A DNA stretch of 64,000 nt. Source: Bigelowiella natans CCMP2755 (Eukaryota; Protista; Cercozoa). Made by a program: the position numbers and the translations under genes. The DNA lies in assembly GCA_000320545.1 (NCBI GenBank), contig ADNK01000136.1:124001-188000 (forward strand), in the 5' to 3' direction. The notes below the pieces were generated by a model. It made no database searches, was not told the origin of the DNA, and was given only the letters and a program-made list of their open reading frames with translations. Of the stretch, positions 2,093 through 9,573 are shown piece by piece; position 1 is the first letter of the stretch; every line of letters starts with the position of its first letter.

Positions 2093-2986
2093 ATGCATTC
2101 CAGCTCTGGTCCGAAAAGGGTAAGGGTTGTTTTCAGCAAACAGCCCCCCAGGATTTGGTATAAAGATCAAGCACACGAGCCAAAATTCTTCGAAGTTACT
2201 GTTGCTTTGAAAGATGAACATGGTAGACGAATTCGAGGGATGGATGTTCCCTTAACTCCAAAGCTGCTGTATAACAACATGTCCGAGGTGAAGAGGCAGA
2301 CAATACTTAAGATAAATAAGGATTCGGTTCCCAAGATTGGGAAGACTGGTGTAGCAGAACTTAAAATACGCATTGATTCGGTCTCCAAAAACCATGATAA
2401 TCATGATTTCATTGTCAACATAGCACCTGAACCCGGAGTCGTCCCTCCCGGTGTGGTGTTCGAGAGCGCAAAATCTCAACCAATTACTGTGAGGTCTAAG
2501 AGAAATCGTGGAAAAAGAAAAAAAGAGGGAGCCATAGATGCTGAAAGTTTATCTGCTATTGCTTCATGGTGTAGATTTAACGCCGGGATGTTAGAAGAGC
2601 TTTATAGAAGGGAAACATGTCCATGCTGCGAATATATGATGAATTCTCACGCTCAATCGTGCAAGTTGAAGACGAGCATTCAAGCCTACCGAAATATCGT
2701 GCAGAGGCTTATTCCAGGGAGCAAAATGGCAGGTGTATCAAAGAGAGCAAAGACAGAAGACTACCATTTCCCGCCAACACCGCAGCATACTAGACTACCT
2801 TCAACGGAACTCAAGAGGAATCGTAGCCCCGCTCTTGCTTTAGATCAGATTCATACTTTGATACCGTCTGTGCCAAATAGCTCTGTACAGATGTCTGATG
2901 ACCTTTTTTCGACAATGGGTTCATCTGTGCCATCCGTACCTCCTCTCTTACGGAATCCCTCTTTAACTAGGAAAAAGTCGGGTTAG
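2093..2986 (+). CDS. Intronless CudA/STAT-like (p53-fold) DNA-binding protein
   Basis: First in-frame ATG at 2093; FSKQPPRIWYKD...KIRIDSVSKNHDNHDFIVNI...SQPITVRSK, basic NLS-like RSKRNRGKRKK, CPCC-x6-H-x3-C, Ser/Pro tail. Confidence 0.55.
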   Translation: MHSSSGPKRVRVVFSKQPPRIWYKDQAHEPKFFEVTVALKDEHGRRIRGMDVPLTPKLLYNNMSEVKRQTILKINKDSVPKIGKTGVAELKIRIDSVSKNHDNHDFIVNIAPEPGVVPPGVVFESAKSQPITVRSKRNRGKRKKEGAIDAESLSAIASWCRFNAGMLEELYRRETCPCCEYMMNSHAQSCKLKTSIQAYRNIVQRLIPGSKMAGVSKRAKTEDYHFPPTPQHTRLPSTELKRNRSPALALDQIHTLIPSVPNSSVQMSDDLFSTMGSSVPSVPPLLRNPSLTRKKSG

Positions 2987-3232
2987 AAGTGATGAGCGTC
3001 CGTGTCTTGTTTAATTGTGATAGGCATTATGAAACACAGTACGTTGTCTGATGAAGGAAAATGAAGAGATCAATCAAGATGAATCTAACTTTGCGCTTTT
3101 GATCTTTTGATGCGGATGCACTTGCACATGTGTGCACACACGTGTGCGATGCCAGACTTGCAACGACAGGAATGTGCGCAAGTCATGGAAGAACACTGTG
3201 TGTGACTGCTGCGTTCGCGCGCAGCTTGATTA

Positions 3233-3380
3233 TATAGCCATTAAAGGCTATAGAGCGTACCGAGTCAAAAGTACACATGTTCCCTGAGACATGTGTGGTA
3301 GAGCATGTGCTGTAAAGAACATGTGTACTAAACTACATATGTTCGTACGTGCGTACGCTATATAGCCCTTAAAGGCTATA
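3233..3380. mobile_element. ~148-bp MITE-like element with self-palindromic TIRs
   Basis: Left tatagccattaaaggctatagagcgtac vs revcomp of right end tatagcctttaagggctatatagcgtac (28 bp, 3 mismatches); internal IR agtacacatgttc/gaacatgtgtact. Confidence 0.7.
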
Positions 3381-3439
3381 GATGATGTTCTGCGCTAGTT
3401 CAGTGTGACCACTACCACAGTGCAACAGACATGCAATAT

Positions 3440-3731
3440 CACATGTGCATCACGTGTGCCATTTGCTGTCTAGCTGTGTCCACAATCAGCACAAGGGGTT
3501 GAAATTTGGATTCCCAGCAGCCGTCCTCAATTTCCTCACATACATCAAATGTGCCTCACGTCACAAGTCATCGTTTGTGGGTGTCTTTTGCAATGCATGC
3601 AATGACATTGACTGGCAGTGGCACGCAAGTGCAATGAAGCAAACGTCAAACAAAGCTAGAAAGCGCCCAATTTGACATCATTCATTGCGAAAGATCAATG
3701 CTTTTCATTCGAACACATCAAAGACAAGTTA
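3440..3731. repeat. Diverged outer left arm of large inverted repeat
   Basis: Reverse complement aligns to ~7694-7786 plus 8642-8825 with small indels and TG/CA swaps. Confidence 0.85.
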
Positions 3732-4399
3732 CAAGCCCACCATGTTCACGCATTCTTTGAAAGACACGATGTTCATTTTCCATGCTAGCATGTGATTGTG
3801 TTTCACGTCATTCGAATTCCGAGATGCATTGCTTTGACCGACAAAGCAACAAAAAATCGAAATTCAAAAATTTTCTTTGGGTTTCTCTCGTGGAGTGAAA
3901 AACCAAAGTGTGAAATGTGAAATGTGGAATTTGTGTGCAATGTGTTTGCTAGTGAGTGTGCAATGTGACACATGTGACATGTGTGCACACATGCATTGCA
4001 CATGCTGTCACTGTGTCCATGACTCCTCCCGCCTCCAAACGCAAATTCATCGACCTGTGACTTTGACTGCGCCTACAACAAAGTGATTGCTGCATTGGCG
4101 GGGGGCTAGCTTGGCCCGTGGCCGCACCTAGGTGCAGAGCAGGAGCCGGTCTCAAACTCGAAGTCTGCGTCGTCATTGGCTTGGGCTCCACTGCTGCTAG
4201 CCTGGTTCACCCCGCCATGTTGTTGTGCCATTTATGGGAGCCACATGGATGGCTAGCGTTTTGTCTCCATAGGGCACAAAAGGGATTGGATGGATGTGAT
4301 GCTAAACGCACATTGTAGAGTACGAGACAAATGCATACATTATGGACACGTAATCCCCATATATGCATAGTATGTAGTATATTACTTTGTCCATTATGT

Positions 4400-4484
4400 A
4401 CAACCTAAGCGCTGCAGCCGCTGCTTTGCATAGCTACAATGGGATGACTATTGAAAAGATTGCATCTCTTCATTGCATCCGTCT
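4400..4484 (+). repeat. Dispersed repeat ending TTCATTGCATCCGTCT followed by (TA)n
   Basis: Homologous copies at 6903-6987(-), 47714-47796(-), partial 30615-30678(+), terminal 36250-36265(-). Confidence 0.75.
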
Positions 4485-4492
4485 AATATATA

Positions 4493-4533
<41 letters not shown>

Positions 4534-4782
4534 ACATATATATAAACGCACAGATGGTGGTTGAAAAAGAAAGTGTGTAGTAATTTAACACCCTTAATGC
4601 AACCAACTCAGTATTTATGAAATTAAATGCGTTTTATTTAAAATTGAGAAATTTGGGCCAATCATTCAATTCCAAACAGATGCATACCCATCAGGATGCA
4701 CCTAGATTGTTATATGCTGCAAAAATCTATTATCGAGTTTATCACTTCGCATTATTAGAATTACAATCCTATATTATCCCAA

Positions 4783-4992
4783 TCAAGACCACTTGCTAAA
4801 ACCACGATGTTCTTTACACCGCATGTCACGGGAGCCATCAAGACATCTTCTTCCTCCTCCTCCTCCGCCTCCTCCTCCAAATCCTCTTCCTCCAAATCCT
4901 CCTCCTCCAAATCCTCCTCCTCCAAATCCTCCTCCTCCAAGTCCTCCTCCCATCATCGCCATTAACATCATAGGATCAATACCGCCACTATT
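4783..4992 (-). pseudogene. Inverted copy of the GTPase gene 3' end (C-terminal ~69 codons)
   Basis: Encodes ...GGIDPMMLMAMMGGG...RGFSKWS*, identical to the end of 5303..6604, without the GTPase domain. Confidence 0.85.
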
Positions 4993-5000
4993 ACGGGATT

Positions 5001-5050
5001 TATCTCTTCGGCATCGATTCCTTTTGAGAAGGATCGGTGCCGAAGAGATA
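5001..5050. other. Stem-loop at inner junction of the inverted repeat
   Basis: tatctcttcggca-tcgattcctt-ttgag-aaggatcgg-tgccgaagagata: 13-bp perfect outer stem plus near-perfect inner stem. Confidence 0.85.
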
Positions 5051-5302
5051 ATAAGCTGTTTTTGTGTGCAGCCTTAAAACATACAACGGGGGGGTTTTAG
5101 GATAAATAAGCTCATTTGGGTTTTTTGAAGAAAAATCCCCTTGATTTGGATATATATTCCCTGTTGAAATGCCGGAATGCGCTACAGCTATGATTGTGCG
5201 TACCAACCTTCGCCTGCTGTACCACTTACGTGTATGTGTTACGGAGGCACAACTCAAAACCTCGGGTGAACATACCACCACTAACACACCAAATCCAACG
5301 CT

Positions 5303-6604
5303 ATGAAGACAACGCTTTCTTTTCGAAGCTCTGCTAAATCGAGGAAACAAAAACCCGAACCCGCGGTGATGAAAACAACGCTTTCTTTTCGGGGAGCCTC
5401 TATGTCCTCCTCTAAATCACGAGGTCGCACAAAGAAACCCCTCACAATTTGCATGATCGGGGCAACAGGAGTCGGGAAGAGCTCCGCTGCTAATTGCATA
5501 GCGAACATCAAAAAGGACTCACGGAATGCATTCAAAGCCAGTCCAGAAGTGAAAAGCTGTACGTACAAGACTGCTGTAAAGAAATGTCGATGGTTTGACG
5601 ATAGACAACCAATGTACCTTGTTGATACTCCTGGTCTTGGAGATTCTGAAGGACGCGATTCACGGCACATAGCAGAGATGGCAAAGGCGCTTAAGGAGCA
5701 TGGAGAAGTCCACTTGTTTGTAATCGTATTTAACGGGGAGGATGCTCGCATGAATGAGCACACCAAAGGAATGATTGGTATATTTTCAGAAATGTTTGGA
5801 CCAGAATTCCTTCAAAATGCAGCCCTGCTCTTCACACACTGGCCCATGGATAAATACTCTATCAGACGCCGTCGACGTTCTGGCTTGACCAAGGAGAATC
5901 GTCATTTCGAATTCAATAAAAAGTTTCAGGAAATATTCGGCAGTACTCGTGACTTGCCATCGTTCTTTTTGGACTGCGAGTACGATAGATGCGACGAAGA
6001 AGAGGCACGCCCATACAAAGAGGAAATCCTTAAGGTGAAGGAGCTCGCAGAGGCCATGGATCCATTCGCCTGCTTGGATGTAAAGAATGTTCTTTCTCTT
6101 AAGGACCGAGCTGAGAAACTTGCCGAAGACTTTAAAAACAAATTGAAAATATCTAAAGCCAAAGCAGCCGAATCTGCTAAGAAACACGAGAAGGACATGG
6201 AAGAAGAAAGAAAAGCTAGACGGCGTGCTCTCATCAAGGCGGAAAAGGAGAAAAGAGCTGCCCTACAAAAGGCGAAAGAGGAGAGAAGAGCTGCCTTAAA
6301 AAAAGCGGAAGAAGACAAGGATCGTGCAATAAAGAAACAGGAGGAGGAGCATAGAAAAGAGCTCGAACGGGAACAAAACAGAAGGAAATCCTGCAATAGT
6401 GGCGGTATTGATCCTATGATGTTAATGGCGATGATGGGAGGAGGACTTGGAGGAGGAGGATTTGGAGGAGGAGGATTTGGAGGAGGAGGATTTGGAGGAA
6501 GAGGATTTGGAGGAGGAGGCGGAGGAGGAGGAGGAAGAAGATGTCTTGATGGCTCCCGTGACATGCGGTGTAAAGAACATCGTGGTTTTAGCAAGTGGTC
6601 TTGA
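5303..6604 (+). CDS. Intronless AIG1/GIMAP-like TRAFAC GTPase with coiled coil and Gly-rich tail
   Basis: G1 GATGVGKS, G2 SCT, G3 DTPG, LLFTH (AIG1-like G4); E/K/R coiled coil; GGGGF repeats; 433-aa uninterrupted ORF. Confidence 0.85.
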   Translation: MKTTLSFRSSAKSRKQKPEPAVMKTTLSFRGASMSSSKSRGRTKKPLTICMIGATGVGKSSAANCIANIKKDSRNAFKASPEVKSCTYKTAVKKCRWFDDRQPMYLVDTPGLGDSEGRDSRHIAEMAKALKEHGEVHLFVIVFNGEDARMNEHTKGMIGIFSEMFGPEFLQNAALLFTHWPMDKYSIRRRRRSGLTKENRHFEFNKKFQEIFGSTRDLPSFFLDCEYDRCDEEEARPYKEEILKVKELAEAMDPFACLDVKNVLSLKDRAEKLAEDFKNKLKISKAKAAESAKKHEKDMEEERKARRRALIKAEKEKRAALQKAKEERRAALKKAEEDKDRAIKKQEEEHRKELEREQNRRKSCNSGGIDPMMLMAMMGGGLGGGGFGGGGFGGGGFGGRGFGGGGGGGGGRRCLDGSRDMRCKEHRGFSKWS

Positions 6605-6853
6605 TTGGGATAATATAGGATTGTAATTCTAATAATGCGAAGTGATAAACTCGATAATAGATTTTTGCAGCATATAACAATCTAGGTGCATCCTGATGGG
6701 TATGCATCTGTTTGGAATTGAATGATTGGCCCAAATTTCTCAATTTTAAATAAAACGCATTTAATTTCATAAATACTGAGTTGGTTGCATTAAGGGTGTT
6801 AAATTACTACACACTTTCTTTTTCAACCACCATCTGTGCGTTTATATATATGT

Positions 6854-6894
<41 letters not shown>

Positions 6895-7655
6895 TATATA
6901 TTAGACGGATGCAATGAAGAGATGCAATCTTTTCAATAGTCATCCCATTGTAGCTATGCAAAGCAGCGGCTGCAGCGCTTAGGTTGTACATAATGGACAA
7001 AGTAATATACTACATACTATGCATATATGGGGATTACGTGTCCATAATGTATGCATTTGTCTCGTACTCTACAATGTGCGTTTAGCATCACATCCATCCA
7101 ATCCCTTTTGTGCCCTATGGAGACAAAACGCTAGCCATCCATGTGGCTCCCATAAATGGCACAACAACATGGCGGGGTGAACCAGGCTAGCAGCAGTGGA
7201 GCCCAAGCCAATGACGACGCAGACTTCGAGTTTGAGACCGGCTCCTGCTCTGCACCTAGGTGCGGCCACGGGCCAAGCTAGCCCCCCGCCAATGCAGCAA
7301 TCACTTTGTTGTAGGCGCAGTCAAAGTCACAGGTCGATGAATTTGCGTTTGGAGGCGGGAGGAGTCATGGACACAGTGACAGCATGTGCAATGCATGTGT
7401 GCACACATGTCACATGTGTCACATTGCACACTCACTAGCAAACACATTGCACACAAATTCCACATTTCACATTTCACACTTTGGTTTTTCACTCCACGAG
7501 AGAAACCCAAAGAAAATTTTTGAATTTCGATTTTTTGTTGCTTTGTCGGTCAAAGCAATGCATCTCGGAATTCGAATGACGTGAAACACAATCACATGCT
7601 AGCATGGAAAATGAACATCGTGTCTTTCAAAGAATGCGTGAACATGGTGGGCTTG
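6395..7655. repeat. Perfect inverted repeat, right arm; contains GTPase 3' CDS and downstream sequence
   Basis: Reverse complement of 3732-4992. Confidence 0.95.
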
Positions 7656-7786
7656 ATGACATGACACGCACATTGCATTGCTGTGTCCATCATCTTGCAA
7701 CTTGTCTTTGATTGATCTTTCGCAATGAATGATGTCAAATTGGGCGCTTTGACGTTTGCTTCATTGCACTTGCGTGCCACTGCCAG

Positions 7787-8641
7787 CTTGGTTGTCCACT
7801 TTGGAGGCAAGAACCACGCGCCGCGAGTTGCTGATCCCACGTGTGAAGGCCACAAACGCGCTTCACTGCACAATCGCGATCTTGATCGCCACACGTGCGT
7901 CGAAAGCAAATCAAAACTCCCACTCAAACGCGAGCTTGGATTGCAATGTGTGTGAACGTGAAAACCATCTCGTGAAACACGACATGATGAATGTGCGAAG
8001 TGCAATGACAACGGTGATGTTCTCATCACAAAGCGGAAACGTGTGCACGCCACATGCGGTCACGCCATTTGTTCCATCTGAGCACAGTTGTGCGCATGGC
8101 GTCGAGTGCCGAATGAGATTTGCATCACGTCAGATCAAACAGCAATTGCAGCGTTTCATGCTCGACATTGCAGGGCACAAGATTGACCGCGATGCAGTCA
8201 AACTGCAGACAAAAAAAAAAAAAAAAAAAAAACAGCCCATTTCTGCACGTCTCATCGCTTTCCTGATGAGAAAAAGCTCCATCTCTGGTCTGCACATCCT
8301 TTTTTGCCACGTTGCTTCAATCTCAACTGCGTGTTTTTTTCAATGCAAAATCGTTCAATGCAATGCACATGCACACAACTTTTCTTTGACACGTTTCAAA
8401 ACGCTTTTCACTTTGCAATTTGCTGACTTGCCTCCGTTTGCTCTCGCATCTGCCATGCACACGTTTGATTCGCTGACCCATTTGCACGTCTAGACGTGTT
8501 CATTCTCATGCTGCGCTGCGTTCGCGATTTTTCCCCGCCATGTCACTTCGCGCAATCGCAACTTTGGCTTTTGGCAGCGCTCTCAAGCATCACATTTTGC
8601 GTCGATCGTGACCACTTTTGCCTCCAAAGTGGACAACCAAG
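7787..8641. mobile_element. 855-bp non-autonomous TIR element nested in outer right arm
   Basis: 24-bp perfect TIR cttggttgtccactttggaggcaa / ttgcctccaaagtggacaaccaag; flanked by CCAG (7783-7786, 8642-8645); empty site cactgccagtca in left arm (~3609-3620, minus). Confidence 0.85.
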
Positions 8642-9573
8642 CCAGTCATTGCACACATTGCAAAGGACGACACCCACAAACGATGACTTGTGACGTGGAG
8701 AAGGCACACTTGATGCGTGTGAGGAAATTGAGGACGGCTGCTGGGAATCCAAATTTTGACCCCTCACACTGATCACAGACACAGCTAGACAGTGATGGCA
8801 CGTGACGTGCACGTGATGTCACACGTCCCTGGGTCCATTGTCTGGCACAATGCTGCATTGCGTGAACTCACCTCATGACCTGCTTGATTGATTCATCCAC
8901 AGCGATGATTCATGGCGCACGTGTGTTTCGACATTGCAACGATGTGCACAACCTGCTGACAGTTCTGGAGTTGCGTGTTGCTGCAAGCGCGCACAACGTT
9001 CCATCGTGAGTCGTGAGCAGGTCCAAACGAAACGTGGCTTGTCCCAAGACAAAAACAAAGACAACGATGAAAAACATCGTTCCCAAAGTGTGGCAAAGGC
9101 AAGACACTTGCAATGCACGAAGCGCAGTGTTGGAGTTCCTCGAACTAGCTCTAGCTAGCCAGTGAGAACCAACTGGTGCCGAAGCCAGGGAGACCAGCAG
9201 GATTTTGAAGTCGGCACACTAGCTGTCATGGAGCAGTGTCTGTGACTAGCAGCAATGTGGCAGCGACGCAAAGCATGTGCTTTGAGCAGGAACTTCCTGA
9301 AGGCCACATCCAAGCGCCGGTCCACGGTCGGGTCGCCCGAGGCCCGAGATTCGGGCAAGCAGTTGGTCCTCTCGCTTGTCTGGAAACTGCGATGACAACG
9401 ATGATGACAACGACAACAACAATTACAACAATGACCATCAGCATCAAGATTCATCGTAGGTTGTTTGATGATCTAAAAAAAGTCCAAATTTTGTTTCAGA
9501 GAACAGAGCCCATCAGTAACAAATCCGAAACTCACAGTAGCACAGCAGCACTGCACTGCACAGCGTGCTTGCG

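Follow-up and report, generated by a model that had tools for sequence, protein, structure and literature searches.

Palindromic duplications that arise by fold-back, primed by short inverted repeats, are familiar from the ribosomal DNA of Tetrahymena and from gene amplification in yeast and mammals, and flip-flop inversion is familiar from plastid inverted repeats, the yeast 2-micron FLP/FRT system and bacterial invertible promoters. The human Y palindrome P6 undergoes arm-to-arm conversion in multi-kb tracts, with rare inversions (PMC3723533), while Caenorhabditis elegans maintains long, nearly perfect inverted repeats that carry divergent or convergent paralog pairs (Zhao et al. 2007, PMC1803023). 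Here we describe a further example of this known type of structure, a small palindrome at a single gene, encoding an AIG1/GIMAP-like GTPase, with no sign of a switch. It lies in a 64,000-nt stretch of the genome of Bigelowiella natans CCMP2755 (GenBank assembly GCA_000320545.1, contig ADNK01000136.1, positions 124,001 to 188,000 of the forward strand), hereafter referred to as the window; all positions are counted from its first nucleotide. The explanation that best accounts for the locus, to which we assign a probability of roughly 0.7, is a passive palindromic duplication whose inner part has been kept identical by recombination between its arms.

Structure and extent of the palindrome

The palindrome comprises the following features, from left to right.

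3433-3731, no strand: left outer part, made up of the diverged outermost block (3456-3606) and the near flank (3612-3731)
3438-4232, no strand: TpA-erased mirror zone on the left, with almost no TA outside CTAG
3732-5001, no strand: left arm, 1270 nt, perfect over 3732-4992
4783-5001, minus strand: orphan GTPase fragment, codons 362-433 and stop, with no start codon and no GTPase domain
5002-6385, no strand: spacer, 1384 nt, holding 301 nt of upstream region, the transcription start and codons 1-361
5003-5050, no strand: quasi-palindrome (hairpin), 48 nt, directly adjoining the left arm at its inner end
5303-6604, plus strand: coding sequence of the AIG1/GIMAP-like GTPase, 433 aa, intronless
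6386-7655, no strand: right arm, 1270 nt, inverted copy of the left arm
7154-9423, no strand: TpA-erased zone, with one TA outside CTAG in 2.27 kb and an excess of CA/TG
7656-7787, no strand: right near flank, pairing with 3612-3731
7788-8644, no strand: internally deleted transposon, 857 nt, with 22-nt terminal inverted repeats (TIRs) and a 4-bp target duplication, CCAG
8645-8826, no strand: right outermost block, differing from 3433-3606 mainly in reciprocal CA/TG dinucleotides

Both a repeat search and blastn recovered a single inverted repeat, and base-by-base comparison of its arms revealed identity at 1268 of 1270 positions. The only mismatches (4993/6394 and 4995/6392) lie no more than 9 nt from the inner edge, leaving a perfect stretch of 1261 nt. 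These results bear out the layout of arms and spacer given in a preliminary description of this locus, including the C-terminal codons, stop codon and downstream DNA that both arms share. The coordinates it gave for the repeat are also correct, but the identity of the arms is not quite 100%, and homology extends outside them.

Each arm consists of codons 362-433, the stop codon and then 1051 nt of downstream DNA, and the last 219 nt of the GTPase open reading frame (ORF), stop included, fall within the right arm. The minus strand of the left arm holds these codons, with an ORF at 4783-4971 and a match to GTPase residues 359-433 at 96%. The arms are otherwise ordinary 3' untranslated region (UTR) and intergenic DNA without long ORFs. 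A 15-nt coding repeat is identical between the arms, as is a (TA)29 microsatellite of 59 nt (4486-4544 and 6843-6901). Searches of the locus against Rfam matched no RNA family and returned only sub-threshold matches to microRNA models, on the (TA)n tract. Beside this tract, 4399-4489 and 6899-6989 belong to a dispersed repeat of ~90 nt, with at least 15 copies on other contigs at ~89% identity, that may be a miniature mobile element.

The inverted repeat is the sole repeat of at least 150 nt in the 64-kb window, and no other copies of its arms or near flanks were found in the whole assembly (91.4 Mb, 3736 contigs searched). Since neither arms nor flanks recur elsewhere in the genome, and since the arms hold conserved coding sequence that is collinear with a paralog (see below), the structure cannot be read as a transposon with long TIRs, and this interpretation was rejected. 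The quasi-palindrome at 5003-5050 is likewise unique in the genome and is predicted to fold, as DNA, at -21.9 kcal/mol (z = -8).

Past the perfect arms, the palindrome continues from ~3433 to ~8826, with inverted homology between 3612-3699 and 7711-7786 and between 3456-3606 and 8645-8801. Within the near flank this homology takes the form of identical blocks of 36, 38 and 14 nt split by indels of 12, 18 and 43 nt, and the 43-nt indel, which is flanked by the microhomology CAAG, abuts the outer edge of perfect identity. On the left side only, 3648-3659 carries a 12-nt insertion, ACAAAGCTAGAA, that contains CTAG. Beyond 3433 and 8826, alignments of purine/pyrimidine-coded sequence were no better than those of shuffled sequences. 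A dispersed repeat family could be ruled out as the cause of the similarity between the flanks, as 3380-4390 matches only itself and its partner.

On the right side, the palindrome is interrupted by the 857-nt transposon, for which the left side represents the empty site. The TIRs of this insertion are perfect, and at both ends it corresponds to the terminal sequences of ~7.48-kb elements located on other contigs, indicating that it is an internally deleted member of this family. Full-length copies of the element were found at L030:506-7981 (C2208), L031 and L032; the first two share 95.5% identity across 7456 nt, and strong TpA depletion, with ratios of observed to expected TA of 0.08-0.25, is common to all three. 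Of the proteins encoded by the family, the 792-aa ORF had no match in Pfam, and the 309-aa ORF had a sub-threshold match to DndB.

Order of duplication, TpA erosion and re-homogenization

Previous work has described TpA-specific hypermutation in B. natans, which converts TpA to TpG or CpA and, within the regions that it targets, proceeds at ~6e-7 per site per generation, compared to a baseline of 3.5e-10 (bioRxiv 10.64898/2026.01.13.699255). The distal part of each side of the palindrome lies in a TpA-erased zone, and the differences between the two sides therein allow the order of events to be reconstructed. In the outermost block (3456-3606 versus 8645-8801) there are 18 mismatched bases, 16 of which are contained in seven reciprocal CA/TG dinucleotides and one TA/CG dinucleotide, a pattern that bears the mark of this hypermutation. 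Reciprocal CA/TG differences arise only by separate erosion of each side, indicating that some or all of the erosion came after the duplication. The inner DNA that is equally TA-erased, amounting to 588 nt (500 nt of arm and 88 nt of near-flank blocks), displayed no discordant sites, whereas ~31 would be expected at the density of the outer block (8 discordant dinucleotides per 150 nt). The identity of the arms is therefore far above what the age of the duplication would allow, indicating that the inner DNA was made identical again after erosion.

Gene conversion between the arms would be the natural mechanism for this re-homogenization. Perfect identity ends at the 43-nt indel and block identity ends at the transposon insertion, as expected of conversion tracts limited by heterology. 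Moreover, the arms have accumulated no differences in 1261 nt, compared to ~0.45% between isolates (P ~0.003 under equal rates), implying that the last homogenization is more recent than the split between the isolates. The palindrome thus serves as a natural experiment, in which strand-specific scars (CA or TG) record duplication, erosion, transposon insertion and re-homogenization, and it points to homologous recombination operating between 1.3-kb inverted repeats in the Bigelowiella nuclear genome.

The boundary of erosion, at 4233 and 7153, falls inside the perfect arms. Erosion has spared the proximal 760 nt, which have normal TA content and include (TA)29, even though this intact tract lies only ~250 nt from the TpA-erased zone. 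The termination of erosion within the arms, together with the untouched 59-nt tract, indicates that the mutator is not targeted by the repeat itself and, more generally, does not single out DNA merely for being duplicated or able to form a hairpin, which provides a constraint for work on how it finds its targets. We also considered homology-guided mutation, given the sharp left edge of erosion at the palindrome boundary, with 3413 and 3437 as the final TA positions. This candidate is weakened by an eroded patch that lies beyond this edge, at 3087-3230, and by the inner edge of erosion falling inside the arms. The interval between the patches, 3231-3413, is an island of normal TA content.

Expression and relatives of the GTPase gene

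Two features define transcription at and beside the palindrome.

2093-2986, plus strand: upstream neighbor gene, Pfam DG1062_N (PF28397), intronless and expressed
5212-6807, plus strand: extent of the intronless GTPase messenger RNA (mRNA), from four transcriptome contigs, with poly(A) after ~6773

The four GTPase contigs (L013-L016, from samples 3300017138, 3300017192, 3300017170 and 3300017184 of the Joint Genome Institute, JGI) align without introns from 5212/5248 to 6773/6807. Both L013 and L014 carry poly(A) after 6773, with an AATAAA ~20 nt upstream. Compared to the window, L016 has zero substitutions and differs by one 15-nt repeat unit, and L013-L015 show ~0.45% divergence. The transcripts start inside the spacer, with 210 nt or more between their 5' ends and the left arm, and end 170-200 nt past the stop codon. 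Accordingly, the mRNA holds 390-420 nt of one arm, about a third of its length, and none of the other arm, and cannot fold into a 1.26-kb hairpin. The transcript contig of the upstream DG1062_N gene extends no farther than 3095, leaving a gap of 640 nt before the left arm. No transcript spanning both arms was present among the assembled poly(A)+ contigs, and scans of the JGI contigs for exact matches to the left inner junction or to a 24-mer of the distal arm detected none, although such scans are weak, as polymorphism between isolates may break an exact match. Collectively, nothing in these data suggests a self-silencing hairpin RNA at the GTPase locus.

The closest relatives of the DG1062_N gene are found in the chlorarachniophytes Amorphochlora and Lotharella, at 50-53% identity. 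Synteny with Amorphochlora amoebiformis was examined as a guide to the ancestral arrangement and proved uninformative, as only the DG1062_N gene is common to both and its neighbors differ.

The GTPase protein is organized into a GTPase domain, a Lys/Glu-rich helical region, a Gly/Phe-rich tail and a conserved, Cys-containing C-terminus. Its earlier identification as an AIG1-type GTPase is confirmed by a match of residues 47-179 to Pfam AIG1 (PF04548) at 51.3 bits, compared to a cut-off of 27, with the profile aligned over positions 1-125 of 212. The G1 P-loop GxxxxGKS is represented by GATGVGKS and the G3 motif DxxG by DTPGLGD, which is invariant across the homolog alignment, while the G4 position reads FTHWPMD and is not the canonical (N/T)KxD. 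The nearest solved relatives in the PDB are GIMAP7, GIMAP4, GIMAP5 and Toc34. The top-listed PDB match, 3zuq (botulinum neurotoxin B), involves only the Gly-rich tail and was dismissed as low-complexity similarity with no homology.

A paralog on C3548, whose protein cluster includes the JGI model Bigna1/127114, shares 76% amino-acid identity with the GTPase and is collinear with it across the 6386 boundary, and no inverted repeat is present at its locus. The Cys-containing C-terminal motif is also kept in more distant homologs. At the N-terminus (5303-5400), the sequence MKTTLSFR is tandemly duplicated, with the copies 22 residues apart, and this duplication is present in the transcript-derived proteins as well; JGI gene calls on the GTPase transcripts begin at a later ATG (399 and 395 aa). 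One transcriptome protein, P0002, is identical to the GTPase over its first ~170 residues and then drops to ~70% identity in a diverged C-terminal half. The model of the C3548 paralog falls into the 90% cluster of P0002, which is either a chimeric transcript assembly or the product of conversion with the paralog in another isolate.

Origin of the palindrome, alternative explanations and known systems

Given that the paralog is collinear over 6386 without an inverted repeat, and that the C-terminal motif is conserved, the gene with the right arm represents the ancestral arrangement, from which the left arm was copied. A fold-back type of event may have copied the GTPase 3' end and ~1.3 kb of downstream DNA in reverse, ~300 nt upstream of the gene, and the hairpin at 5003-5050, which marks the junction, is likely to be the footprint or center of this event. 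Based on known mechanisms, two routes are possible, and both fit the locus. A break beside the hairpin could have been followed by fold-back priming on imperfect microhomology at 6386-6394, producing a copy that was partial from the start; priming at this position would explain why the only two mismatches between the arms sit there. Alternatively, fold-back at the hairpin could have generated a head-to-head duplication of the whole gene, with a subsequent 1.3-kb deletion in the left copy. After the duplication, TpA hypermutation acted separately on the distal portions of the two sides, the transposon landed in the right side, and the inner 1.26-1.39 kb later became identical again, probably through non-crossover gene conversion between the arms that stopped at the indels and the transposon. 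A crossover between the arms would be expected to reverse 5002-6385 and, with it, the inner ends of the arms, leaving the gene, its promoter and its protein unchanged, and would therefore constitute a neutral flip.

Several points weigh against a passive duplication maintained by recombination between its arms. Both arms and the orientation of the spacer are known from one assembly alone. The distribution of indels is uneven, with three in the 120 nt of the near flank and none in the 1261 nt of the arm, and this can be accommodated only after the fact, as a progressive shrinking of the conversion domain. Furthermore, the baseline mutation rate is low enough for 1.26-kb copies to remain without differences over ~1 million generations, so that identity in substitutions does not demand ongoing conversion, and a single recent re-copying cannot be told apart from repeated conversion. 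The alternative to which this leads, namely that the identical segment stems from one re-duplication in the recent past or from one long round of conversion, with the arms otherwise recombinationally inert, is in keeping with this tolerance of the mutation rate and with the sharp outer edge of identity at the CAAG microhomology flanking the 43-nt indel. However, the near flank at 3612-3731, which lies outside the perfect tract, also lacks discordant sites, suggesting at least two rounds with different endpoints, and the identical microsatellite points to a very recent event; we therefore consider this explanation unlikely, while giving it more weight than the others discussed below. It is also conceivable that an assembler or a rearranged clone created one arm, or the perfect identity of the two, and that the true locus is single-copy or contains diverged copies. 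The arms, at 1.27 kb, exceed the length of a Sanger read, and their identity persists even across the (TA)29 microsatellite, which is unusual for two independent copies. On the other hand, inverted homology that continues beyond the arms and is unique to the locus is not expected of an assembly fold-back, and the diverged inverted flanks with their reciprocal CA/TG differences and one-sided transposon identify a genuine inverted duplication. In addition, something must fill 3731-5002, for which the left arm is exactly the expected content, the window contains no Ns, and read support would be required at each of two separate junctions. An artifact thus appears distinctly improbable.

The remaining alternatives ascribe an activity to the repeat. 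The preliminary description had proposed that read-through across both arms would give a ~1.26-kb hairpin of double-stranded RNA (dsRNA) matching the 3' end of the GTPase mRNA; in a self-silencing locus, this dsRNA would direct RNA interference at that end. The geometry of the arms permits such a hairpin, and the upstream gene is on the same strand, so that a failure of termination would transcribe the left arm in antisense. The transcripts, however, stay within 5212-6807, two of the four contigs ending in poly(A), and the upstream contig ends at 3095. Neither the left inner junction nor the distal arm is represented among the contigs, the overlap between arm and mRNA is limited to the 390-420 nt noted above, and the gene is readily assembled from several transcriptomes, indicating that it is not silenced. 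Self-silencing is accordingly not borne out and has very little probability. The same description had correctly noted that recombination between the arms, by inverting the spacer, would restore the same protein (433 aa) in the opposite direction, and its suggestion of an invertible locus is sound insofar as the evidence for gene conversion, implying that the arms recombine, makes an occasional inversion of the spacer plausible. It does not extend to a programmed cassette, in which site-specific or regulated recombination would flip the spacer as a switch. While long perfect arms around a complete promoter-plus-gene unit are what such a cassette might look like, the sequence offers no basis for a difference in expression or product: the arms are identical, and the spacer takes the promoter, transcription start, 5' UTR and start codon along when it inverts, so that either orientation encodes the same mRNA and the same protein and the two are functionally equivalent, with no ON/OFF or variant outcome. 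Neither a recombinase gene nor a short specific site is evident, and the paralogous locus has no such structure, making a programmed switch the most improbable of the explanations considered. Finally, the spacer might flip appreciably in culture, or low-level read-through might produce dsRNA from the arms, with one of two consequences: the repeat could help to attract the machinery of TpA hypermutation or of silencing to the gene's 3' flank, or a 3' hairpin of its own could tune the GTPase. Targeting across whole arms is made less likely by the intact (TA)29 and by proximal 760-nt segments whose TA content is normal in both arms, and we regard this scenario as highly doubtful.

A small palindromic duplication re-homogenized by its own arms can be compared to each of the systems introduced above. 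As in flip-flop inversion systems, inverted repeats flank a segment that is able to take two orientations, but no dedicated recombinase is evident and the orientations do not differ in function, so that membership in this class is not supported. The resemblance to fold-back duplications is closer, as the inner junction of the large inverted duplication coincides exactly with a short quasi-palindrome (5003-5050). In contrast with those duplications, the short palindrome in B. natans is at the edge of a 1.4-kb spacer and not at the center of symmetry, implying either priming at the 6-9-nt microhomology of 6386-6394 or a later 1.3-kb deletion that made the structure asymmetric. With the C. elegans repeats, the locus shares a kb-scale, near-perfect inverted repeat at a gene, a short spacer and apparently active maintenance; the C. 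elegans repeats carry whole homologous gene pairs and are conserved across species, whereas in B. natans only the 3' end of a gene is duplicated. Compared to the palindromes of primate sex chromosomes, the B. natans arms are ~100-1000x shorter and hold a 72-codon gene tail instead of whole genes. Moreover, they reside in a protist genome and not on a non-recombining sex chromosome, and conversion is deduced from one assembly and not from population data. Nevertheless, like the primate palindromes, the locus has near-100% identical arms around a unique spacer, and in palindromes of the P6 type this identity is held by non-crossover recombination with kb-scale tracts, with inversion of the spacer as a rare by-product.

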